Source: Octopus sinensis
Taxonomy: Eukaryota
Assembly (NCBI RefSeq): GCF_006345805.1
Contig: NC_043009.1
Span: 62,124,001 to 62,188,000, forward strand
Length of the DNA stretch: 64,000 bases
Reading direction: 5' to 3'
Shown: positions 910 through 64,000 of the stretch, one piece after another
Numbering within the stretch: position 1 is the first letter of the stretch
Layout: each line of letters starts with the position of its first letter
Program-made: the position numbers and the translations under genes
Notes under the pieces: generated by a model
Databases searched by the model: none
Told to the model about the DNA's origin: nothing
The model's input: the letters and a program-made list of their open reading frames with translations, nothing else

Positions 910-1044
910 GTAAATAGTGTAAACTCGTTTCCTATTCGTCATTCTATCTAAGAATTATTGCATTGTTAGAGTTAATCTCAGTATTGACTTGTATTTAAAA
1001 GTATTGACTTGATTGAAATAAAAACAGCGCAGTTTCGTTTCAAG
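910..1044 (+). other. Possible 5'-UTR intron of the zinc-finger gene
   Basis: Donor-like AAG|GTAAAT at 910 and acceptor-like TTTCGTTTCAAG ending at 1044, six bases before the ATG. Motif match only. Confidence 0.3.
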
Positions 1045-1050
1045 GGGAAA

Positions 1051-2226
1051 ATGTTGAATATATTAGAAACGGATTCTACGCGTATAAAAACCAGTTATAA
1101 CTGTAATAATGACCAAGAAAACACAAAATATAAAGAAAATGTTTTGAGTATTTGCTCTGACATGTCCAATTTGAAGATTTCCTCTTCTGAAGATGAAAAT
1201 ATCTCATTCTCAGATAAATGTGTTGTGTGTGATGTGGTATTAACTAGCGAAGCTAATGCTAAGCAACATTTTGAAGGTAGGAAACACCAGAAAAAAGTTC
1301 AAAGTCAATCTGAACCAATCTTTCCAAACAGGACACCTGAAAATTCATTCGTTGACTGTCATACACCAGTAAACTTACCTGTAAATAATGAATATAAATG
1401 TGTTGTATGTGAAGTGGCATTTACTAGCTCAGTTATTGCCAAGCAACATTTTGAAGGTAAGAGACATCAGAAGAATGTTCTAAGTCAACCTATAGCAGCC
1501 GTTTCAAACAGTCCACCTGATAATTATTCCCAAGGCTTCCACACCCAGGAAAATGGGCCTGAAATAAATAAAGACGAATGCAAGTTGTGTGATGTCAAAT
1601 TTACAAGTCCCTCTCAGGCTGCCGATCATCTGAAAGGTAAAATGCACCAGAAAAATTTTAATACAATGTCTGCTTTTAGAGCGAATATTAAATTGGAGTG
1701 TGATACATGTGGTGTTGTATTTTCTGGAATAGTTGACTTCAAAGCACACTTTGCTGGTCGGAAACATCAAAGAGCTATTGAAAACAGAACTACCTTACCA
1801 AAATTAATTGCTGAGTCAGCTTCTCCTCAGAAACCTTTCTCTGTTGCAGCTGAAGCTTCCCAAGTTGAAGATAAGTGCAAGATATGTGATGTAGTGTTTA
1901 CTAGTGCAGTTACTGCTAAGCAGCATTTTGAAGGTTGGAAGCACTTGAAAAAACTTTCAGCTGAATCAGTCAATTCCAAAACTACATTTGAAAGTTCTCC
2001 TGGTTTTTCCTCTCCAACAGACATACCTTCAAAATACCCAAATAAATGTGATGTGTGTAATGTAGTTTTAACAAGTGCTGCTAATGCTACGGAACATATG
2101 CAAGGCAAAAATCATTTGAAAAATGTTAATCTGAAAACTATCTCTAATGGTTCCATTCATCATTCTACTGACAACGAATTCAATATCAACAACAATTGCA
2201 ACAAAAGCTATTCAAAGAATATTTAA
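1051..2226 (+). CDS. Six-finger matrin/U1-type (ZNF385/ZNF346/ZMAT-like) C2H2 zinc-finger protein, probable double-stranded RNA binder, about 391 aa from first ATG
   Basis: Six widely spaced Cx2C-x12-H-x5-H fingers (CVVCDVVLTSEANAKQHFEGRKH, CVVCEVAFTSSVIAKQHFEGKRH, CKLCDVKFTSPSQAADHLKGKMH, CDTCGVVFSGIVDFKAHFAGRKH, CKICDVVFTSAVTAKQHFEGWKH, CDVCNVVLTSAANATEHMQGKNH) with the H-x-x-G-x-x-H signature. ATG at 1051 is in frame with the 1009..2226 ORF. Confidence 0.88.
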   Translation: MLNILETDSTRIKTSYNCNNDQENTKYKENVLSICSDMSNLKISSSEDENISFSDKCVVCDVVLTSEANAKQHFEGRKHQKKVQSQSEPIFPNRTPENSFVDCHTPVNLPVNNEYKCVVCEVAFTSSVIAKQHFEGKRHQKNVLSQPIAAVSNSPPDNYSQGFHTQENGPEINKDECKLCDVKFTSPSQAADHLKGKMHQKNFNTMSAFRANIKLECDTCGVVFSGIVDFKAHFAGRKHQRAIENRTTLPKLIAESASPQKPFSVAAEASQVEDKCKICDVVFTSAVTAKQHFEGWKHLKKLSAESVNSKTTFESSPGFSSPTDIPSKYPNKCDVCNVVLTSAANATEHMQGKNHLKNVNLKTISNGSIHHSTDNEFNINNNCNKSYSKNI

Positions 2227-16074: not shown

Positions 16075-17030
16075 GTTGAACAACCAAGGCAGATGATTTG
16101 TTTTCAGCAGTGAAGGATTATGTAGGACCATTCATACTTTTGAGAAATGCTGCTAGTAGAATGTTGGCGCAAATATTTGCCAAAAGCTCAATGAACGACG
16201 TGGATGGAAAGCATTCAGCATACAAAAAAGACTATGCATGGGCATGTTGCCCGGAAGCTTGAGGAAGACTGTAGAATTGACACGAAGCACAGCCTTTCTT
16301 GGACACAAGGCTACTACATTACATCACACTTTGAAGGCTATGCGTTTGCAATCCAGGAATCAGAGATTGCCACAAAGTACCTGGTGAACAAGAGAGACAA
16401 TGACGCTCTTGTAATCCCAAGGTGCAACCGCATGTGTAGGTTATATGATATTTCTGTGGAAGACATCAGGCATGTGATTAGCAGCTGTCCTAAAATGTCG
16501 TCACGGAACTACCTCCCTTTGCGGCACTATGTTGTCACTAAAAGAATTTACAAAGCCATCCGCAAGAAAGACTGTCATGAAATAAACTTAGAAAATCCCT
16601 CTGTTATGGAACACATTCATAAACATCAACTCAAGGAATACTGGTGGAATATTCCCATCAAAACTTCTGTCAAATGTAAACATAATAGGCTGGATATTAT
16701 CATTTGGGACAGAGGGGCAAAAGTATGTATCGTCATGGAGGTCAGCTGCCCTGCAGATATAAATATCTCTTTGAAAATCAAAGAAAAAGAGGATATCTAT
16801 GGACATCTGCTTCGAAACCTCCAGCTTCTATATCCAGACTTTGAAGTCATATTCATACCAATGATAATTGGAGCACTAGCTTTTGTTAGTAAATGCTTAA
16901 ATGAGAATCTGGATAAACTGGGATTTTCAGAAAGAGAAATCGACCGGCTAAGTCGTACATTACAAGTACAATCTGTGAGTGGAACAGTAAAAATATGCAA
17001 GACATTCTCAAGTTCCAAATGTGAATTTGT
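16075..17030 (+). mobile_element. R4/Dong-like non-LTR retrotransposon C-terminal fragment (zinc knuckle and REL endonuclease)
   Basis: ORF 16204..17115: MHG, EGYAFAIQE, CRLY..VEDIRHVISSC, RHY, WWNIPIKT, NRLDIIIWD, MEVSCP, KIKEKEDIY, IPMIIGALA. Degenerate CCHC and RHD motifs. Confidence 0.85.
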
Positions 17031-17404
17031 CTATGTTAACTACATCCCAAAGATGGAGACTTGTTTCTTTGTTGGAAACCGGTTCCCTCCTCAGTGGGAG
17101 ATTTATAATAATTAAAATATAGAAGAGACACATATGCATATTACGAACTCGAATATTTGGCGTAGGAGACTATTCATCGAAAATACGATGAATACCATCT
17201 CCAACTTTGGAGCCACAACTATCGGCCTTGTTAAATATCTGGTTAATCTTCAGATGAATTAACTGAGGGAGACTTTTATTCACGATCATAGTGATTTTCG
17301 ACTGAAACTTGAACTTAGCATGCAGAGAGTTACTACAAACAACATGGCTGGACACAACATCAACAACACAATCGAGGAACAGCACAAAATCAACAGATAA
17401 TCAA

Positions 17405-21782: not shown

Positions 21783-22392
21783 GCCAAAAGAAACTATTAC
21801 CACCTTAAAATCTCCGAGAATAACCACCACATGATAGGCTTGCAAAAGAAAGAAAATGAATCAAAGACTTTCGGTTAACCACATACAAGATCCTGTTCCA
21901 AGCTTGAGATAAAAATAAAATATTACCAATTGCTATCATCAGCGACGGTATTCCAAAGTATAAATTTACGAGCATCTCAGAATATGCATGCGAGCTGCGA
22001 CGTCGCATAACTAATAGCCATCCACACTCGTAGAAACATACTGCAAAGTAGAATTCACATCTTTCTTTTATACCCACGTGTAGTGTGTCAAGACTTAGTC
22101 TACAGTTAATACAATTTCTATCGAGGAGTAAATTTTTCAACTATTAATTATAATAAAGGGTAAAAATCATTAATGATTTTACCAGGTGGTCAACGTGGAA
22201 ATAAAACCCACAAAATATTTTATAATTATATACTTAATTATATCCTAATTATATACCTAATTATATCCTGTTTCAAGAGGATCTTGTGCGCGGTTAACCG
22301 AAATTTTTTAATGCATTTTCTTTCTTTTGCTAGCCTATTATGTGGTGTATTATTCTCCGAGATTTTAAGGTGGTAATAGTGTCTTTTGGCGT
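21781..22392. mobile_element. MITE-like element with about 115-bp diverged terminal inverted repeats
   Basis: acgccaaaagaaactattaccaccttaaaatctccgagaata... versus ...tattctccgagattttaaggtggtaatagtgtcttttggcgt; begins at the edge of a (TA)n tract. Confidence 0.7.
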
Positions 22393-23338: not shown

Positions 23339-23459
23339 GTCTGTCGCTAAGTTACGAGTTCAAATTCCGCCGAGATCGGGGTCGATAAAATAAGAACTAG
23401 TTACACACTGGGGTCGATGAAATCGACTTAATCCCCTTTACCAAGCTGCCCTTGTGGCA

Positions 23460-24085
<626 letters not shown>

Positions 24086-24214
24086 TATATTCATCATTCA
24101 GTTCTGTTGCCATTTCTTGCCGAATTTCTTCCTGGCACGTAGGACAGTGAAATGCACTGTATAAATTGTTTGGCCATTAAAATAAACACACCAGATTGTT
24201 CATTTACAAAGTAA

Positions 24215-25445: not shown

Positions 25446-25971
25446 TCATTATTATTATTTATAATTGTTTACTGATATTTTAAGCGGTGACTAATTTGCT
25501 CCTTTTTATATTCGTTTGTGGGAAATCGCTTTGCTTTTGTTTGATTAGGCGTCGCTCGTGACACCTGTTTTTCTTTTATTTTCTGTGTGTATATGTGTAT
25601 GTCGTGTTGGCATTATTTATATTGCTTGTAAATATAATTTTTTTCACATTGACGTATGGTCAGTTGCATGTATAGGTAATTATTCAATTTACGTACGTAC
25701 TGTGTAATTGGTGTGGTTTCCCGGGGTTCCTGGTGCTGGTTTCGACGTCTGGAGTATTTCGCATTGAGATATCGCGCATTTAAGAAAGAAACTACACTAT
25801 TTAACAAAAATCTTGCCCATATTTTAAAATCCTTTGATTTAACAGAACTTTTCTCCACAGTTGTATCGCGAAGATTTCTTTCCATTGAACCGGTGTTATT
25901 GGAATAAGTTTGTTTTTTGGAGAGAGCTCCTTAGTGTACGTCCAAGCTGTTATTTAGCCCAGAGCTTCTTC

Positions 25972-25990
25972 CTTATTATTATTATTATTA

Positions 25991-26025
<35 letters not shown>

Positions 26026-26062
26026 GTATTCTTCTTCTTCTTCTTTTTCTTCTTCTTCTTAC

Positions 26063-26157
<95 letters not shown>

Positions 26158-26212
26158 TATTATTATTATTATTATTATTATCATTATTATTATTATTATT
26201 ATTATTATCATT
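25972..26212. repeat. (TTA)n/(TTC)n compound microsatellite
   Basis: Direct reading. Confidence 0.95.
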
Positions 26213-26214
26213 TT

Positions 26215-27060
26215 AACTATTCAATGTTTGGTAGACCGAGGCAAATTTCTACTGCAGCTCCGTGTCGCAGGGGTGTGTGCTCTTTTCTGCTGTTGAGAGT
26301 GTGCAAACTCTTCCCGGAACTGTATTATGTTAGCTTTTTTCCTTGAGGTGTGGTGCTATCTTTGGTTGTGTTACTGTTTGTATTGGGTGTTGAGTGTGTA
26401 ATGCTGGATGGAGTTTATTTCACTGGCTAAATGTTGTATAGAGTGTGTCTTGTCTTTGTGGGTTGTCCTATTTAGGATTGATAGTGTCTTGCGTAGGATG
26501 TGGGCTGTTCCTAGTAGGGCTATTTTTTGGACAGTGTGTAATTTTGAGGATCCAGGTATTGTTTCTACATTTTTGCTCATATGATTTTTTATCATTCCCA
26601 ATGCTCCAGTTATTATTGGTATTGTTTTTGCTTTCATGCCCTACATTTTTGACTTCTCCACTTTATTTTTTTGACAATATTTTGATCGGTTGGAACTGCA
26701 ATGTCTATCAGTAAGCAGGTGTTTTTCCCTAATCGTTGACTGTTATGTCTGGGCGATTAGCTTTTATTTCTTTGTCGGCTTGAACCGGCACATCTCAGAT
26801 GATTCTGGCCTGATCCTTGTCTTGTACCTTGCTTGGTTCATGCTTATATCACCAACTGTCAGTTTTGATGCTGTAATGTTAGATTATTGTCCAGTGGATA
26901 TAACTGCTTACTTTGCCGTGTCTGTATACATATTCAGACTTGGCAAGGACTGGGCAGCCCGAGATGATGGGGTCAATTGTCTCATTGTGCTTGTTGCACA
27001 TTCAGCTTTTGGCGTTGAGGCCCGTTTTCATTATTTTGTTTTTATAATTGTTTGTAGTCA
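26215..27060 (-). mobile_element. R4/Dong-like LINE 3' fragment with 3' UTR
   Basis: TIDPIISGCPVLAKSEY, KEIKANRPDIT, TIPIITGALGMIK..QKIALLGTAHILRKTLS; the 3' UTR runs into (AAT)n. Confidence 0.82.
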
Positions 27061-28179: not shown

Positions 28180-30240
28180 TGCCAGATCGATAGATGATTG
28201 TGTTTAATCCGAATCATTCACAAGAAGCTTTACCAAATAATAGATCGACCAAATTGACAGTATATTTCAAGATGAATGAAGAAAATCTCCCAGCAAAAGA
28301 TATCCTCTATTTTGACTTTCCACAACATTATACTTGGTGTAGCAATAATAAAAGTTGGAGGAGAAGAGTTAGATAAAGTAACGATATTCCAGAAGCTATC
28401 TTATCTTAGTCTATTACTTCAACATAAAGCGGGGGCGACAAGCTTTGAAAATTAACAGTGTTGTTAGCGAACATTTTAAGCACGCATATTAAATGATGAA
28501 TCTATTAGAAAATGATCAAGAATGGGAACGTTGTCTAAATGAGGCAAGAACAATATGTTCGGCGAATGATTTACGAATTTTGTTTGTCAGTATTCTTCAG
28601 TTTTGCTCTCCATGTAGACCACTAGAATCATACAACATGTTTCGTGAAGATCTTTGCCAGGATCACTTCCACCAAATGAGACAACACAATTTTTCTGATG
28701 AAGCAGCTTTGGATATTGCACTGAATCATATGCTGTGTGAAGTGGATCATCGCATGGATTGCCTGCTGCTATTTATTATCTCCGAATGAACAATGTTCTA
28801 CTTCATGAAGATGAGATGGATCCAAATGCAGAAGAATCTTTCAATGCTAGCATCCATATGTTAAATAATGACCAGAGAATCATTTTTCAAAAATATTCAA
28901 CAGAAAATTGATAGAAATGAAGGTGGTTTGATATTTATTGATGCACCTGAGGGTACTGGCAAAGCTTTTCTTCTTAATATATTACTGTCTTATATGCATA
29001 AAAACACCCAACTAGCTATTGCGACAGCGTCATCAGGCTTTGCTGCGACACTATTGAAGCTAGGTCGCACTGCTCGCTCTCGATTCAAGCTCCCCATATC
29101 GGTAAACTGTAATTCAAAATTCAAAATATCTCCTTTTGATGTCACTGGCCGTTTGCTTCCTGATGCCCGCTTGATTGTTTGGGACGAGGCACCCATATGT
29201 CATCGTTGTCTATTTGAAGCTCTGAATCGAACACTGAAGGATGTAATGAACAACGACTTGATCTTTGGTGGCTAATTGATAATTTTAGGTGGTAATTTCC
29301 GTCAAATTCTTCCAGTGGTTCGAAGAGCACAAAGGTCTTCTCTAATTAGAGCTTGTTTGAATGCGAAGTACTTCATCTCACCATGAATATGAAAGTGCAA
29401 AACTGTCTCAGCAATAATGATACCACCTCTCAAGCTCGACTGACATATCATTCTGTTTGGTTATTGTAAATTGGTGATGGAAGAACCCCCAATGTTCAAA
29501 GACAATTATATGATGAAGTAACAGAGATTCCTCAGCAATTTTAAGTCAACAGCACGGAGGATTTTATCAACCATGTCTATGAAGATTTAGAGGTTAATTT
29601 TAGCAATGCCCAATGGTTATCATTACGTGAAATATTAACAACAAAGAATGAAGAAGTCAGCAATCTAAATAACCATATAATCCAGAAATTTTCAAGTGAG
29701 ATATATACTCTGATGAGTATTGATTCCGTTGCAGAACATCAACAATCTGCTATCTATCCTCCTAAATTTCTGAATTCTCTTAATATAAGTGGCATGCCAC
29801 CTCACATTATCAACTTAAAAACGGGTGTTCCTATAATGTTGCTAAGAAACTGAGATCAGAGAAATGGACACTACAATGGCGCACGTTATAGAGTGTTAGG
29901 GTTAGGGTTAAGGTTAGAACGTGTAGACAGACGTTATAGAGTGTTATCGGTGTCAGATAATATAACCACTGCAAGTAAAATAACTGGTGTTGATGCAGGA
30001 CGCACACTTTTGATTCCCCGCATTATTCTGCAACCATCTGATACCGATTTGCCCTTTACTTTGAAAAGACGCCAATTTCCAGTGAGACCTGCTTTCGCAA
30101 TGTCTATAAACAAAAGTCAAAGACAAAGCCTTTCTAAGTGCGGCATCTATATGCCCGCGTCCGTATTTACTCACGGCCAGTTATATGTCGGAATCAGTAG
30201 AGTTGGGGATCCAGTGAATCTTAAAATATTTGCTGATTAA
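28180..30240 (+). pseudogene. Helitron RepHel relic (PIF1-family helicase), frameshifted
   Basis: STKLTVYFKMN..LYFDFPQHYTW; LLENDQEWERCLNEA; FIDAPEGTGKAFLL (Walker A); TASSGFAATLL; IVWDEAP; RRQFPVRPAFAMSINKSQRQSL; VFTHGQLYVGISRV. Confidence 0.92.
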
Positions 30241-30353: not shown

Positions 30354-31584
30354 AGTATGTTTCATTACTACTGTTATTCACAATATTTTGCTTTTTCATT
30401 GTCACTAATATGAGTTGGCGATTATCAGGTTGCGCAATTACCAGTATTTTTATTGTGACACCACAACTAGCAGTATTATCGATCAGGACATTGGGGAGAT
30501 TCCAACCACTTCCTTTCATTATTATTATCATTTTTTCCTCCTTCTTTCTTCAAAACATTAGCGCTCTGGACAAAATACTTAACGGTATTTCGCCGGTCGC
30601 GATGTCAACTTTGCCTTTTATTCTTACAGGGTCGATAAAATAAGTACCAGTCGAGTACTGAAGTCGATGTAATCGACTCATCACCTCCCCCAAAAAACTA
30701 CTGGCCTTGTTTTGCTTGTTTTTCTGTGGACAAGGTATCTCAAGAACGGTTGGATAAATTCGGATGACACTATCAGGAATGTTTGGCCTCGTGATTGGCA
30801 CGAACTGATTAGATTTTGGGATAGATCCGAGAATTCTGGATTATTTTTCCTGTTTTTTACTTACTTTTTGAGAGGGGTTGGATTCATTTTTAGTATTTTC
30901 GTTTGTGAGAGCAGTCGAGTTTATTTAGATATTCTCATTTTAAAACTCATCTCTGGCTAATCGTTGAGAGTACATTGGTGTTGAATTGGCGGAGGTTTGC
31001 GCTCCCTGAGTACTCTTGTTATTGACTTTTAATCTGCATGTTTGTTACAATCATTTACCGAGATACACCCAGCGTTCTAAGGCGAGTGAAGGATAAGAGG
31101 TGCTACAGTATGACTGAAAGCTCGAGGAGGGGAAGTGGCAGAGGCAGTAGCTTTAAGTAGCTTTAAGTAATACAACACAGACATTCAAATGGACAGGGTT
31201 TTTCTAAGGATGTGGGCAGTACTTGTCAGTACAATCTTTTGGATTTCTCTGAGACATGGTCCTCCTTTTTTTAGTTTGTTCCTTCTCGAGCCATGCATGG
31301 CTCATAAGGGCCGGTTTCCCGGTTTCCTTGGTGTATAGGTTCCCCACCTGGACGGGATGCCGATCCGTTGCAGGTGAGCTGCAAGATACAGGAGGAAAAA
31401 GTGAGAGAAAGTTGTGGCGAAAGAATCAGCAGAAGTTCGCCATTACCTTCTGCCGGAGCCGAGTGGAGCTTAGGTGTTTTCGCTCATAAACACACACATC
31501 GCCCGGTCTGAGATTCGAACCCGCGATCCTTCGACCGCGCTTCCGCTGCTCTAACCACTCGGCCATGTGCCTCCACACATGGTC

Positions 31585-31880
31585 CTCCTGGGATATTATC
31601 CAGATGTTTTTTGGCACCCCTGTTCCTGTTATTGTGGGTGCCCTGAGTATGATAAGAAATTATCATACCCAGGGCACCCACAATAAAAGGAACAGTTTTC
31701 ACTTTAAGATGCCACATCTTTTGTATTTCGATTTCTAGGTCCTTATATTTACTTAATTTATCAAATTCCTTCGCAGATATGTTTTTATCAGTGGGAACAC
31801 TTACATCTATCAGTCTACAAATATTTTCTTCCCTGTCTTTAATGACTATGTGTGGTCGATTAGCCTGGACTGCAATGACA
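31585..31880 (-). mobile_element. R4/Dong-like REL endonuclease fragment
   Basis: QANRPHIVIKDREENICRLIDVSVPTDKNISAKEFDKLSKYKDLEIEIQKMWHLKVKTVPFIVGALGMI. Confidence 0.88.
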
Positions 31881-32439
31881 TGGAGAAAGAAGAGCTGAAC
31901 GATTGATGAATCACAGTGACAAAAGGGGGTAGGCGAAACAGGAGGAGAGTACATAGCCCCACCCCAAGAAATCAACAAAAACCTAATTCTGAAACCACAA
32001 CTGCAACACAATTCACAACTACTCAGACAAAAACAACAAAAACAAGATCAACAACTTCAGACAGCAACATCATCAACAACAGCATGAAATCCATAAACAC
32101 AGAAACAACCAATTACATCGACTTCAAAATTATTCATGAGTCTGTAGACGAAATGTATCCATCAATTTCACTGTTGTGACTACGTCTAACAGTGAATTGA
32201 TGAATTTTGTAAGTCAACCCCAAAACAAAATAGAGACAGAGAGAAAGGAATTTGAGGATGAAATCCTCATAACCCCCATGGGCAGACCTTTAGTTAAAAC
32301 GTCGTCAGACGTTTATAAAACTATAATAGAAAAGTTCCCAGGTAGTGTAGGGATTAAAAAAAAATTTGTTCATAAAAAGCTGTTGGAAGGGCCTTTTAAG
32401 AAATTTTTATCGGTAGATAAGCCCCGCAATACTTAATAT

Positions 32440-38269: not shown

Positions 38270-38798
38270 GGGATTAAGTCGATTACATCGACCCCGAAAG
38301 GATGAAAGGCAAAGTCGACCTCGGCGGAATTTGAACTCAGAACGTAGCGGCAGACAAAATACCTATTTCTTTACTACCCACAAGGGGCTAAACACAGAGG
38401 AGACAAACACGGACAGACAGACAGATTAAGTCAATTATATCGACCCCAATGCGTAACTGGTACTTAATTCATCGACCCCAAAAGGATGAAAGGTAAAGTC
38501 GACCTCGGAGGAATTTGAACTCACAACGTAGCGGCAGACAAAATACCTATTTCTTTACTACCCACAAGGGGCTAAACACAGAGGAGACAAACACGGACAG
38601 ACAGACAGATTAAGTCAATTATATCGACCCCAATGCGTAACTGGTACTTAATTTATCGACCCCGAAAGGATGAAAGGCAAAGTCGACCTCGGCGGAATTT
38701 GAACTCAGAACGTATCGGCAGACGAAATACCTATTTCTTTATTACCCACAAGGGGCTAAACATAGAGGGGACAAACAAGGACAGACATAGGTATTAAG
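38270..38798 (-). repeat. Tandem array of about 180-bp SINE-B-derived units (also 39960-40500)
   Basis: atcgaccccgaaaggatgaaaggcaaagtcgacctcggcggaatttgaactcagaacg...acagacagattaagtc repeated head to tail. Confidence 0.88.
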
Positions 38799-39031
38799 GT
38801 ACTAGCGCAAACGAACAGGGCAAATAAAAATAACAAAAATGTAGATTAGTTCAGGACAATTGTTTCGCTATTAATAAATTATGTAATTTTACTCGCACAA
38901 CATATCTGTAGCTCTTCAGCCGAACCCGTCCAGAATACAATTTACTCGACCGCACGCAAGATTTTGCCATAACGACAAACACACGTGCGGTTCAGTCGAT
39001 TGCACTCGCTGTTATAATTCAAGTGCCCCTG

Positions 39032-39083
<52 letters not shown>

Positions 39084-39604
39084 GTATATATATATATATA
39101 ATATTTTTATGTGTGTGTTTGTGTCTGTGTTTGTCCCCATCACCACCATTTGACAACCGATGTTGGTGTGTTTGCGTCCCCGTAACTTAGCTGTTCGGCA
39201 TGAGAGACTGATAGAATAAGCACCAGGCCAACAGGGCATAAGTCCAGGAGGCGATTTCTTCGACTAAAGTGTGGTGCTCCAGCATGGCCACCGTCAAATA
39301 ACTGAAACAAGTAAAAGAATAAAAGAATACCAGACAAACGTTCCATACCACTAAACCAAGAAGGTTCCTTGAATATTTACGATGTATTTTAAGACTAAAT
39401 AGTAATTCTGTTTACGTTTGCGTAACTGAGATATTTGGGTTGGATTGCATAGTTAGCGGTTTTACACTTCTTTCTATATTCTGTAACTGTCACAATATAG
39501 TAATATTTCTCATGGCACCAGCACACAATTTACAGATCTTTACATTTGTATGTATCGGTAAATTTTTTCACAGGTCCAGCTAGTTATTATTATTATTATT
39601 ATTA

Positions 39605-39662
<58 letters not shown>

Positions 39663-40689
39663 TACCTTCTTTCTTCAAATTTTCTTCTATTTCTCGCCGA
39701 GTGTTTTTCGTACACCTAGGGCAGAGAAGCTCATTGTATGCATTCCCAGATTACACACGCAAATTCACAACAAAAATATGTATTTAAAAAAATAAATAAA
39801 TTCATGAATGGATGTTGTTTTCACATCGATAATGCTCTTCTCAGTACATGAGTCGTTCCAGTTAACACGATTTTTTGCACTTCCTGGTATCATTTTCAAA
39901 TAGGTTTCAGTACCTTTTTTTTTTTTATCATTACTCAAAGCTTCAAATTTGGAGGAAGGGATTAAGTCGATTACATCGACCCCGAAAGGATGAAAGGCAA
40001 AGTCGACCTCAGCGGAATTTGAACTCAGAACGTAGCGGCAGATAAAATACCTATTTCTTTACTACCCACAAGGGGCTAAACACCGAGGAGACAAACACGG
40101 ACAGACAGACAGATTAAGTCAATTATATCGACCCCAATGCGTAACTGGTACTTAATTTATCGACCCCGAAAGGATGAAAGGCAAAGTCGACCTCGGCGGA
40201 ATTTGAACTCAGAACGTATCGGCAGACGAAATACCTATTTCTTTATTACCCACAAGGGGCTAAACATAGAGGGGACAAACAAGGACAGACATAGGTATTA
40301 AGTCGATTACATCGACCCCAGTGCGTAACTGGTACTTAATTCATCGACCCCGAAAGGATGAAAGGTAAAGTCGACCTCGGCGGAATTTGAACTCACAACG
40401 TAACGTCAGACGAAATACGGCTACGGATTTCGCCCGGAGTGCTAACGTCTCTGCCAGCTAAGCATTTTGCCTGGCGTGTCATGATTCTGTCAGCTCGCCG
40501 CCTTAACAACAACAACAACAATGAGAAAGCGATAAAACACTGCTTCGAACTCTATCCAAAAATATCGGGAATAAAGACAACAAATGGAACCTAAAACTAC
40601 TGACAAAATGTTGGACTATATCCGAGTAAGTAATACTCATTAAGATGTGTAGGATGGAAGATTGCGAAGATAAAGCACCGTACAATCAC

Positions 40690-41269: not shown

Positions 41270-42760
41270 GACTTGAGAAGTGTGCCAAGGCCACTTTCCA
41301 GAAAGGTAAAGTGAAGACCACAAATTCAGTCGTGTTAGATGTTGACACAGTCATAAGAGAGCTTGAGCAAGAACAAACATACAAATATTTAGGGATAAAT
41401 GAAGGCTCTGGTATTCAGCATGCAAGCATGAAAGAGAAGATCAGGAAGGAATGTTATAGGAGAGTTCGTGCAGTCCTGAAATCTGAACTAAATGCACGTA
41501 ACAAGGTGTTAGCTATAAATTCCTTAGCAGTTCCAGTTGTTACTTATAGCTACAATGTGTTGAACTGGAATATGAGTGAAGTAAAGAATATAGATAGGAA
41601 AATACGCAAGCTGCTGAGTTGTAATAGGATGCACCACCCAAAGGCAGACGTAGATCGCCTTTACCTTCCCAGAGCCCAAGGAGGTCGAGGCCTGATCCAA
41701 TTTGAACTAGCTTACAAAACAACCACAATTGGACTGGCCAAATATCTTGAAATAACGAATGACTGGATGCTAAAGCTCGTGGAAAATCACGAGAGACGAA
41801 AGAAGCTTCATTCTATCATAAAGGAAAGCAAAACATATGCTATGGATCTCGTGCAGGATACCCAAACTGAACAGCCCGAGGGAAGTACGGCAACTATTGT
41901 TGCAAAGAAGGTGAAAATAATGGCAACGAAAAAAGCGCACGAGCAATTGGCTGATAGGTGGGAGGAGAAACCTCTGCACGGCAAATATGTGGCCCGCAGC
42001 AAACAAGCTGATGTTGACCAGAAGCAAACCCATCAGTGGCTACGGAGCTCAGGGCTAAAAGCTGAGAGCAAAGGTTTCATCCTGGCTGCTCAAGATCAAA
42101 GCCCATTAACCCGGAACTACCAGGCCAATGTGATGAAAAATGGAGCAGACCCAAAATGCCGATTCTGCAACGACATGATTGAAACAGTGGACCATCTAAT
42201 CTCTGGATGTAAAGTCTTAGCACCAGTGGAGTATAAATTAAGACATGACAGAGTTGGCCAATATCTACACTGGCTAATAAGTCGGCATTACAATATCAAA
42301 ACTGCCGACAAGTGGTATAATCACCACCCTGAAGCTGTAACTGAAGGAGAAAATGTAATGATTCTGTGGGACTTTCCAGTACATACAAACCGAACCATCA
42401 AAGCCAATAAACCAGATATTGTTGTGAAAGACCAAAACAATAAAGTTTGCTTATTGATCGATATGAGCATCCCCTGTGATCATAATATCTCGGCGAAAGA
42501 GTTTGACAAGCTCAGAAAATATAAAGACCTACTCATTGAAATTGAGAAAATGTGGCATCTCAAGGCGGTTACAATACCAGTGATCGTAGGAGCACTAGGA
42601 ATGATCAAGAAGGGAACCGAAAATTATATGAGAATGATCCCTGGCTTACCATCCCTGCAAGAAGTGCAAAAGATTGTCTTAACTGGTACATCACACGTAC
42701 TGAGAAGAGCATTGGCGATGTGAGAACTATTACTACCCATGTATTTTAATTTAACTTAAA
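41270..42760 (+). mobile_element. R4/Dong-like LINE, 5'-truncated, uninterrupted 470-aa ORF (RT thumb, CCHC, REL endonuclease)
   Basis: ORF 41311..42723: YKYLGINEG, RLYLPRAQGGRGL, KPLHG, CRFC..ETVDHLISGC, RHD, KPDIVV..LIDMSIP, KEFDKLRKYKDL, IPVIVGALG; followed directly by (AAT)n at 42760-42880. Confidence 0.95.
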
Positions 42761-60542: not shown

Positions 60543-61360
60543 TTAATTATTTTCCGCAGCTATGTTAACATTCCTTTTTTCCTCTTCATTTGTCTCTATT
60601 CCCCTGGAAAATATATAAACCTCATCATAATATTGACTGTTGCCGTCTTCGAATTGTTGTAAGTGAGCTTGCGGTCGAATCTCCACCAAGTCTGCACATT
60701 CACTATACGCTTCAAACAGCTCTCTGAAACTAATAATTTCATATTCAAACACTTTCTGATGGTTAGATTTCTTTCTAACAATCACAGGAGCTCCCCATCC
60801 AGGGTGTGTCGGTCTCAATCGTAACAGAGTTTTCACTACAAAGTACTTCTCTGATATTCCCTTTTCTTGCGTAATAACCACTTTAGCCGAGTTGTTTGTA
60901 TTCAAAGTAAACTCGGCGGTATCCGACCATGAGGTGGTCGTATCTGTCTTATCTTCCTGGCTATTATCACGTTTCCCACCGGCATTGAACTCTAATCCTG
61001 CTGCTTTTATCGATACTTTTCCTCCAATACTGTAATTCTTTTGTAATTTTACCGACCGAGACTCCATTTGCGAACCCTGTGCGTTGAATATATGTTTCTG
61101 CGGTCCGGTTATCTGGCACGTGTATGTGGTTGAGTATTGAGTCAGGGATTTTGTTGGCTCTTTTCGCAGAGGCACTTCAGATTCAAGAAAATCCTCGAAA
61201 CTAAAGTAACTCCACCGAATTTCAATATGATAGGCATTTCGTCGATAGAAACATCTTCTAAGACACGAAAAATGAAGACTTTTCAGAAACTTTTTCCAAA
61301 CTAAATCTTCAATTAGCTTCTGTATATCGATTTCTATTGCATATCTTGGGTTTACTTTAC
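60543..61360 (-). CDS. Terminal coding exon (271 aa) of a putative aerolysin/ETX-MTX2-type (LIN-24-like) beta-pore-forming protein; upstream exon not located
   Basis: Acceptor CTTCTCTCTGTTTTTCAG| at 61361 and a stop-free 818-bp exon ending in TAA at 60543. Contains STTYTCQITGPQKHIF, the alternating S/T-rich SRSVKLQKNYSIGGKVSIKAAGLEFNAGG and TTTSWSDTAEFTLNTNNSAKVVITQE. The N-terminal VCVC part of the ORF is the intronic (CA)n. Confidence 0.7.
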
Positions 61361-61414
61361 CTGAAAAACAGAGAGAAGAACAGATATCAATAACTATACA
61401 ACACACACACACAA

Positions 61415-61491
<77 letters not shown>

Positions 61492-61950: not shown

Positions 61951-62111
61951 CAATGCACTTCGCTAATTCTAAATAATCCTATAACAAGCCTCCATACCCA
62001 TTAAAACTGTAATCTAAAACAGAGTCAACCTGACAATCGCTATCTATCCCATTCCGAATAGTTTATATATATATATATATCTATTATTATATATATATCT
62101 ATATATATATA

Positions 62112-62164
<53 letters not shown>

Positions 62165-62330
62165 TATAATATATCTATAGATATATATGTTATATATATA
62201 TAATATATATTATATATATATAATATATATATATAACAGTTACGATGTACTAACAGACAGTTACATTCTTAAATGTTAAACATTAAAATATTAAATATAG
62301 AAAATTTATTGAATTATAAAAAGCTATGAA

Positions 62331-62675: not shown

Positions 62676-62947
62676 AGTGTGAGAAAACGGTTAAGCAATA
62701 GTTATTCTAGATAAGATATGAAATAGAGAGTGAAGTGGAGGAATGAAAATAGACGTGAGATATGCAGGGATATTGTATCTGCAGTTCCATTATTTAGGCA
62801 GAATGGTATACATACAGGATTCCTGTACCTTGTGAGTAAGTTCCAATAGTATTTAAAAGTGGTCATTCCAGGCATAGAGTTTGTAAACGTGTGTTATGAA
62901 TCGGATTTTTTTCATATATAAAATAACATAACAGTTTATATATATAG

Positions 62948-63005
<58 letters not shown>

Positions 63006-63519
63006 CAAATTTACAGAAAAACAAAAGATGAAGACAGGCGCAGAAGCAGCAAACAAGTGTATTAGTTTAACACTTGGGCAGAATGGAATAGTCTTTTATG
63101 TCTCGAGCCTACGCTCTTCGACAGAAAGGATTAAGAGGCAAAAAAAAAAGGACGGAGAATGCCCACAAGCGATGTGAAAGCACAAACCAAAGTCATGTCC
63201 CTTGTTTTGAAGTTGTCTTAAACGATACGCTTGTTCTTTTGTCCGGTCAACTACTTTTTCACCCTCTTCTTAGTCTCTTAAAACTTGGATCGCCGGAGAC
63301 TACACCAGCAACTTCACCAAGCTTGCTTGGTTAGGGAGGGGATTACTGGACATCCTGCAGGGTAAAAAACAAAAACCTGTCAATGTAGGGAGAAACTGAT
63401 GTGAGTCAACGACCATCCAATAGCATGTACATATCTATGTTACAGTCAGGACTGATTTTTCTCGTTTCCCTGATTTTTCCTGCTACTGGCTACCAAGTAA
63501 CTCAATGCTACCTGCCACA

Positions 63520-64000
63520 TGAGGACAGATGGAAGTTATCGACCTTGGTAGACAGTCCATCTAGGAGAAGGAAAACTCTGACTCTGAACTTCTGATGCCT
63601 TGCAGTAATACCCAGTCATGGGAAGGCTTCAAGCGTAACTCTCGAGGGAAAATCCGGAGTTGGAGCCCATAAGGCAGTTCATCGTTGATTACAACTTCGT
63701 CCTGGCAGCTCCCGTAAGAGGGCTTCTGTCAAACTGTGACAACCCTACTGTTCCTTTGGACCCAGCAGTGTTGTGAAGAGAGGGAATATGCTGCATAGGT
63801 ATCATTCTGTCTCCCTCAACACATCACCTAGGCTTGTATTCGACCACCACTATACATTACTCATCAACACATCCGCACTATCCACCCGGAGAGGACAATC
63901 CAGCTACGCCTACAACACGGGAAGTAGCAGTTAGCGGGGATAAGCCTTCAATCAATGACGTAAAGCAAGGCACCAGATGTTGTTCCTGAGAGTGGGAGAG
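63520..64000 (+). mobile_element. Probable RTE-clade LINE 5' region
   Basis: ccatctaggagaaggaaaactctga resembles RTE 5' UTR sequence; the window ends in FLRVGE, like the LRVGT start of RTE AP-endonucleases. Confidence 0.45.

Follow-up and report, generated by a model that had tools for sequence, protein, structure and literature searches.

An octopod terminal exon predicted to encode a divergent member of the mollusc aerolysin/ETX-MTX2 family

RESULTS

A large terminal coding exon of LOC115218515

The subject of this study is exon A, a single large terminal coding exon of the Octopus sinensis gene LOC115218515. It lies on the minus strand (61360 to 60543, including the stop codon) of a 64,000-nucleotide (nt) stretch of contig NC_043009.1, the whole of which was analysed and is referred to here as the window. 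The translated exon was 100% identical over 273 residues (amino acids 3-275) to XP_036364338.1, isoform X1 of the gene, a product of 275 amino acids that carries the RefSeq label "uncharacterized protein". Identity was 99% to the O. vulgaris model CAI9732175.1 and 45% to a model from Argonauta hians. Because of these identities, exon A was taken as a conserved coding exon, and a chance open reading frame (ORF) was ruled out by the exact RefSeq match and the counterparts in O. vulgaris and Argonauta.

Exon A codes for residues 4-275, beginning with the last two bases of the Gly4 codon. It thus contains the whole of the predicted ETX/MTX2-like protein except Met-Lys-Ser, which is supplied together with the first base of Gly4 by a separate 5′ exon. 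The acceptor reads ctgtttttcag/GTAAAGTAAACC, with its AG at 61362-61361 and the exon onset at 61360. The mechanically delimited ORF (61544 to 60543, minus strand) is longer, 333 rather than 273 codons, because a (CA)n run just 5′ of the acceptor is read through and accounts for its opening ~60 codons. When the 5′ exon (ATGAARWSNGGT; ATG AAG AGT G/gt) and a paralogous large exon, exon B, were looked for across the window, both were absent; in O. sinensis they would fall past window position 64000. A literature search for LOC115218515 found no paper mentioning the gene.

The original prediction, made from the sequence letters of this DNA, had proposed exactly these exon limits with the acceptor, and the peptides that it quoted, SRSVKLQKNYSIGGKVSIKAAGLEFNAGG and DTTTSWSDTAEFTLNTNNSAKVVITQE, are all present in the translation. 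It also correctly supposed a cephalopod origin and decayed surroundings, and the flanks of exon A indeed consist of microsatellites and transposon fragments. It named no strand and did not identify the exon as the final one, with the stop codon. Its description of the protein as uncharacterised holds for the function but not for the gene, which had already been modelled in RefSeq.

Two tandem exon copies behind a common 5′ exon

The O. vulgaris locus (L002), retrieved via CAI9732175.1, contains a small 5′ exon and two large coding exons, exon B upstream and the orthologue of the window exon downstream (Table 1). The 5′ exon lies ~17.7 kilobases upstream of exon A, and its donor, G/gtatgt, fits the phase-1 acceptor of the window exon. 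Exon B, which corresponds to RefSeq isoforms X4 and X2, is ~70% identical to exon A, and the nucleotide similarity between the copies extends from ~45 nt upstream of the acceptor to near the stop codon. The RefSeq models splice one 5′ exon onto either large exon copy, and isoforms X2 and X3 of O. sinensis are A/B chimeras. Because the O. vulgaris locus holds the 5′ exon, B and A, we conclude that Octopus has two tandem coding-exon copies behind a common 5′ exon. Argonauta hians (locus L001) likewise has a tiny exon and a large exon, the latter in single copy, so that O. vulgaris and Argonauta share this two-exon layout.

The O. sinensis and O. vulgaris versions of B differ at 12 residues, those of A at only 3. 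Over residues ~208-258, B of O. sinensis equals A, whereas B of O. vulgaris differs there (EFRPKLHLQQ against EIRPQAHLQQ), and five of the six between-species differences of B in this block match A. The pattern suggests either a gene-conversion tract or fast change in the O. vulgaris B copy. In Argonauta, the last ~38 codons of the gene form a 114-nt unit, several slightly diverged copies of which come after it in tandem, and the C-terminal tail is a minisatellite there.

Mollusc relatives with the ETX_MTX2 domain

A word-indexed homologue search with the single protein returned only the octopus paralog, and the same kind of search with the family profile returned just 14 proteins. A library-wide HMMER search, in which a two-sequence octopus profile was run against 1.84 billion representatives, gave 40 proteins at E ≤ 1e-3. 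Argonauta came first (8e-73), followed by proteins of ~300-450 amino acids from 2e-17 down, and the nearest non-cephalopod relatives had E-values of 2e-17 to 1e-10. Every named match was a mollusc (chitons, bivalves, gastropods and octopods), the genera including Dreissena, Sinanodonta, Potamilus, Haliotis, Babylonia, Batillaria, Aplysia, Elysia, Plakobranchus, Lymnaea, Physella, Bulinus and the chiton Liolophura.

A family alignment was made of 45 members, 4 from cephalopods and 41 from other molluscs. PF03318 (ETX_MTX2) was matched by 25 of the 45 at E ≤ 1e-3 (best 6e-11), several of them above the gathering score of 22 bits. None of the four cephalopod sequences matched this model. When the octopod profile was aligned with the other-mollusc profile by hhalign, the two matched with a probability of 99.9% (E 3.7e-32) over 235 columns, the whole protein length. 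The family profile searched against PDB sequences retrieved aerolysin-type pore formers only, namely Cry51Aa1 (8e-8), zebrafish Dln1 (1.6e-7), epsilon toxin (8e-5), Sarol-1, the Laetiporus lectin LSL, parasporin-2 and Cry23Aa1.

Predicted structure and the putative insertion hairpin

AlphaFold run on two octopus sequences alone gave an unusable model, with a predicted local distance difference test score (pLDDT) of 34. AlphaFold2 run on the 45-sequence alignment gave a pLDDT of 88.3 and a predicted template modelling score of 0.77. This model has helices at 16-31 and 36-39 and very long antiparallel strands at 91-115, 139-156, 161-185 and 245-272, that is, a predicted elongated multi-domain β-sheet structure of the aerolysin superfamily type. 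Its head helix IDIQKLIEDLVWKKF is family-specific, with a nearly invariant W25. A Foldseek search of the PDB gave 38 matches at E ≤ 1e-3, all from the aerolysin family, in the order Cry23Aa1 (5.9e-11), 2d42 (template modelling (TM) score 0.53/0.57), Cry51, Sip, parasporin-2, epsilon toxin, aerolysin, Mpp75, lamprey immune protein (LIP), LSL, Dln1 and BmALP1. The alignments span the full length of single-lobe ETX/MTX2-type proteins. Foldseek against viral structures was uninformative.

The predicted insertion hairpin is formed by strands 118-123 and 126-130 and is flanked by the long strands 91-115 and 139-156. Hydrophobic and polar residues alternate at 113-130, and the pattern is kept in Argonauta. 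With a turn at A124-G125, the outward rungs would be A123/L126, I121/F128, V119/A130, G117/G132, I115/R134 and Y113/N136. In a β-amphipathicity scan of the octopus protein the hairpin ranked only fourth, so this property alone proves nothing. The octopod branch also has a PTHPGW insertion ahead of the conserved PVxIRRK strand. The C-terminal tail (residues 259-275) shows 24% identity to Argonauta.

The original prediction of an aerolysin-type fold with a membrane-inserting hairpin in the amphipathic segment agrees with these data. The segment coincides with the modelled hairpin (118-130), the model combines long strands with a small hairpin, all 38 structural matches are aerolysin-family proteins, the relatives carry PF03318, and the profile matches in the PDB are all aerolysin-type. 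Its remark that the sequence lacks the usual asparagine of the F.N.T motif was correct, and its suggestion of a divergent protein, perhaps of a new subfamily, fits an octopus sequence that has no direct Pfam or PDB sequence match.

Substitutions between the exon copies

Exons A and B were compared on O. vulgaris DNA, and nonsynonymous (dN) and synonymous (dS) divergence was estimated by the Nei-Gojobori method. The copies differ at 137 of ~816 nt, evenly across codon positions (51/44/42), with dN 0.19, dS 0.19 and a dN/dS ratio (omega) of 1.03. Exon A differs between O. sinensis and O. vulgaris at 4 of 819 nt (3 nonsynonymous and 1 synonymous), which is not clearly below the ~0.9% of the flanks, although this species pair is too close for a selection signal. 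Both results would be expected if one or both copies were decaying pseudogene duplicates whose open frame is a remnant. We find this explanation very hard to credit and rejected it: O. vulgaris has intact copies of A and B and O. sinensis an intact A, every indel is in frame, and the gene has been open since the Octopus-Argonauta split with an omega of ~0.2 (dS saturated). When 137 random substitutions were placed on exon A in a neutral simulation, the mean number of stop codons was 5.4-6.7 and the probability of no stop was 0.0008-0.004, which makes pure neutral decay of A and B unlikely.

Conservation between the copies is also strongly patterned. Identity is 100% at residues 245-258, 88% in the hairpin (116-132) and at 213-244, 56% at 46-70, 55% at 157-185, 46% at the N-terminus, 35% in the C-terminal tail and 12% in the loop 133-140. 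A mix of constraint and diversifying change would fit this A/B comparison better.

Other features of the window

The coordinates of all features are collected in Table 1. A 405-amino-acid open frame contains six C2H2 zinc fingers of the zf-met/JAZ type (double-stranded RNA-binding, U1-like) and is probably a large exon of a ZNF346/JAZ-like gene. A 135-amino-acid PIF1-like helicase fragment is likely the remnant of a Helitron-type transposon. Three ORFs with a common C-terminal motif, ...KEFDKL.KYKDL.IEI.KMWHLK...IVGALG, are apparently pieces of a single non-LTR (long terminal repeat) retrotransposon family, and the longest of them has a weak zf-RVT match. Staggered megablast matches between the window and the O. 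vulgaris locus suggest a shared tandem satellite at different places in both Octopus genomes. The microsatellites comprise ATT/CTT-type runs, which give poly-I/L/Y ORFs, as well as (CA)n and (TA)n.

Table 1. Features of the window and of the O. vulgaris (L002) and Argonauta hians (L001) loci (window positions unless a locus is named)
Feature	Position	Strand	Evidence or remark
3′ splice site, polypyrimidine tract and AG, ctctctgtttttcag/GT, phase-1 intron	61361..61380	−	sequence
Exon A, large terminal coding exon, LOC115218515 isoform X1	60546..61360	−	100% tblastn identity over amino acids 3-275
Predicted N-terminal head, codons ~13-45, helix IDIQKLIEDLVWKKF and second short helix	61226..61325	−	conservation and model
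Predicted pre-stem hairpin, codons 105-133, amphipathic segment SRSVKLQKNYSIGGKVSIKAAGLEFNAGG	60963..61049	−	model and alternation
Variable acidic C-terminal tail, codons 259-275, ETNEEEKRNVNIAAENN	60546..60596	−	A/B and Argonauta identity
TAA stop codon	60543..60545	−	read as ...GCG GAA AAT AAT TAA
O. vulgaris small 5′ exon, ends ...GAC AGC ATG AAG AGT G/gtatgt	L002 32327-32374		donor seen at 32363-32380
O. vulgaris large exon B, acceptor tttcacag/GA	L002 39159-39974		upstream copy
O. vulgaris large exon A, orthologue of window exon	L002 50117-50935		downstream copy
Argonauta hians tiny exon and large exon	L001 20903-21808		single copy
Argonauta hians 114-nt tandem repeats	L001 21808-22138		tblastn matches at 21847, 21885, 21941, 21979, 22017
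Zinc-finger open frame, probable ZNF346/JAZ-like exon	1009-2226	+	PF12874 8e-42, PF12171 1e-22
PIF1-like helicase fragment	28868-29275	+	PF05970 1e-33
KEFDKL-motif ORF	41311-42723	+
KEFDKL-motif ORF	16204-17115	+
KEFDKL-motif ORF	31484-32011	−
Putative shared tandem satellite	38287-40459; L002 19914-20688		~91-93% megablast matches, ~180 base-pair offset
Microsatellites	23452-24164, 25861-26346, 61380-61490, 62080-62260, 62940-63010

DISCUSSION

Taken together, the profile matches and the structural model argue that exon A very probably encodes nearly all of a 275-amino-acid single-lobe protein of the aerolysin/ETX-MTX2 β-pore-forming type, which would belong to an octopod-specific divergent branch of a mollusc-wide family. 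A number of results weigh against this assignment. Scanned against Pfam at E ≤ 10, the exon product matched no family. In phmmer it retrieved nothing from the PDB beyond noise (SafD, E 2.7), and a cephalopod-only profile matched neither Pfam ETX_MTX2 nor any PDB chain. Family membership is argued from transitive links and profile-profile comparison. The AlphaFold model was built on an alignment dominated by canonical relatives, and the fold prediction leans on those relatives because the octopus-only alignment gave no usable model. The Foldseek TM-scores are moderate (0.33-0.57, with a root-mean-square deviation of 7-12 Å) and there is no tight superposition, although moderate TM-scores are usual among elongated, hinged aerolysin-family proteins. 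In addition, an omega of ~1 between A and B would also be expected under relaxed constraint.

Without a direct Pfam or PDB sequence match, and with a model that depends on a deep alignment, the octopus protein could be thought to have reached a β-rich Ser/Thr pattern by convergence, in which case it would not be an aerolysin relative and its model would be an alignment artefact. This is barely credible to us, and an unrelated β-rich protein was rejected on the HMMER and hhalign links between the octopod sequences and their Pfam-positive relatives. The alignment with these relatives spans the whole protein and is not confined to a low-complexity patch.

The remaining points against a pore-forming-type protein concern the hairpin, a conserved asparagine and secretion. 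The hairpin segment (104-148) is 43-45 residues long in octopods and 47-59 in the 41 other molluscs, a shortening of 7-10 residues that hhalign places as a 10-column gap at the hairpin tip. Clearly hydrophobic residues fill about three rungs, after which come a glycine rung and mixed ones, and the return strand is charged (KRDNSQEDKTD). More than 90% of the family, Argonauta among them, have asparagine in the FxNxT motif, whereas both Octopus copies have a cysteine there (Cys85). No signal peptide was found in the octopus protein, the maximum 15-residue hydropathy within the first 45 residues being 0.67. Because the return strand is charged and so few hydrophobic rungs remain, it is uncertain whether the octopod hairpin could span a bilayer and make a pore.

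A serious rival, because the hairpin is shortened, is that octopods kept the fold and lost the pore-forming ability, and that the protein now serves a soluble function, in binding, in regulation or as a decoy, for example by holding a different pore former in check. The charged return strand, the few hydrophobic rungs, the lost asparagine and the lack of a signal peptide also speak for this reading. There is a precedent for such a role in toad BmALP3, which is reported to be a negative regulator of its paralog BmALP1 (PMC7995273). We nevertheless consider loss of pore formation unlikely. The hairpin is among the best-conserved blocks between the fast-diverging copies A and B, and the alternation is kept in Argonauta, which suggests that the hairpin itself is under selection. 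The flanking strands can also contribute to the barrel in the aerolysin family.

The absence of a signal peptide extends to the longer O. vulgaris N-terminus and to all 45 relatives, and a classical secreted toxin is therefore disfavoured. A secretion signal is not strictly defining for the family, since several accepted animal aerolysin-family members also have none. The divergence between the tandem copies is of a diversifying type that is typical of toxin genes, and the aerolysin fold occurs elsewhere in venoms and defence secretions, such as natterins, centipede β-PFTx and hydralysins. Even so, it is in our view highly improbable that the protein is secreted as venom by the posterior salivary gland, because neither the octopus protein nor its relatives have a signal peptide and the family occurs in non-venomous molluscs (bivalves, abalone and chitons). 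Our literature search turned up no report that connects cephalopod venom with this gene or with an ETX/MTX2 protein. A venom or immune-effector role is speculation; to judge from Dln1, βγ-CAT or LIN-24, a part in endogenous defence or as a regulated pore seems more likely.

Two terminal motifs were noticed among the mollusc relatives. About half of them begin with MGCC, MACC, MFCC or MxCGC, which resemble myristoylation/palmitoylation motifs, and the longer ones (414-455 amino acids) end in -VTSV, -ITTV, -MTSV or -VTKL, which resembles a class-I PDZ ligand. The literature search for acylated ETX/MTX2 proteins found nothing. It is conceivable, although improbable, that the mollusc family represents an intracellular, acylated class of the aerolysin fold and not a set of secreted toxins, with the pore module on the cytosolic membrane face in a gasdermin- or LIN-24-like manner, and that in octopods the anchor disappeared, the hairpin became shorter and the coding exon was duplicated behind its common 5′ exon. 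If so, the family would form a cell-autonomous pore or membrane-remodelling system, an acylated ETX/MTX2 protein on the cytosolic face being unusual, and a single promoter, through a choice between the two terminal exons, would yield two variants that diversify rapidly.

Returning to the pore-forming-type protein, we infer its pore formation, activation, localisation and biological role by analogy. A soluble monomer would be made without a signal peptide, and its N-terminal head domain would bind the target membrane. Prior removal of a terminal peptide may be required, for which the acidic tail 259-275 is a candidate. The monomers would then oligomerise, and the amphipathic hairpin (approximately residues 106-136) would peel from the central sheet into a β-barrel pore. 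The exon copies A and B, diverged at surface and head positions with the hairpin kept, may provide two effector variants with different targets.

The closest published comparison is with the glabralysins of Biomphalaria glabrata, which are single-lobe, intron-containing proteins of ~300 amino acids encoded by 4-5 exons, and whose tree already has a Cephalopoda cluster (Lassalle et al. 2020, PMC7016736). They were modelled on Cry23 and Cry45 (4RHZ, 2D42), which are also the top structural matches of the octopus protein, and in both cases the head domain is most variable and the pore module is conserved. The family retrieved with the octopus profile includes planorbid (Bulinus) and other gastropod proteins; the glabralysins were compared by their published description rather than by sequence. 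Glabralysins match the ETX/MTX2 domain model directly. The octopus protein, by contrast, is invisible to Pfam and has a shortened hairpin, and its gene has one tiny and one large coding exon instead of 4-5 exons.

The best full-length structural matches are Cry23Aa1, Cry45/2d42, Cry51Aa, Mpp75Aa, Sip1A and parasporin-2 of Bacillus thuringiensis and the epsilon toxin of Clostridium perfringens (Foldseek 6e-11 to 3e-7), and this group also gave the strongest matches of the family profile to PDB sequences. These bacterial toxins share with the octopus model a three-domain elongated β architecture, an N-terminal helical head and a packed amphipathic hairpin, but identity is only 10-13%, and they are secreted or crystal proteins whereas the octopus protein has no secretion signal. 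Dln1, LIP and BmALP1 are endogenous animal members that were matched by both profile and fold. They join the aerolysin-type module to an extra lectin, jacalin or βγ-crystallin domain or subunit, whereas the octopus protein is a stand-alone lobe.

Rather than founding a new kind of protein, the octopus sequence adds a strongly divergent member, the product of a recent duplication, to a known mollusc-wide family, and the result is in this sense an improvement in annotation. A RefSeq "uncharacterized protein" overlooked entirely by domain annotation of the standard kind gains a predicted fold and a testable mechanism. To our knowledge, no cephalopod aerolysin-like member has been studied functionally, and a literature search for ETX/MTX2 in cephalopods by those terms found no paper. 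Endogenous animal aerolysin-like proteins are an emerging topic, and published work assigns them roles in immunity, endolysosome regulation and regulated cell death or stress. Of possible wider interest are a single 5′ exon that feeds two divergent coding exons with dN/dS of ~1 and intact frames, and a family that, judging from its termini, may be intracellular and lipid-anchored. The octopod branch of the mollusc ETX/MTX2 pore-former family evolves fast and has been duplicated in tandem.

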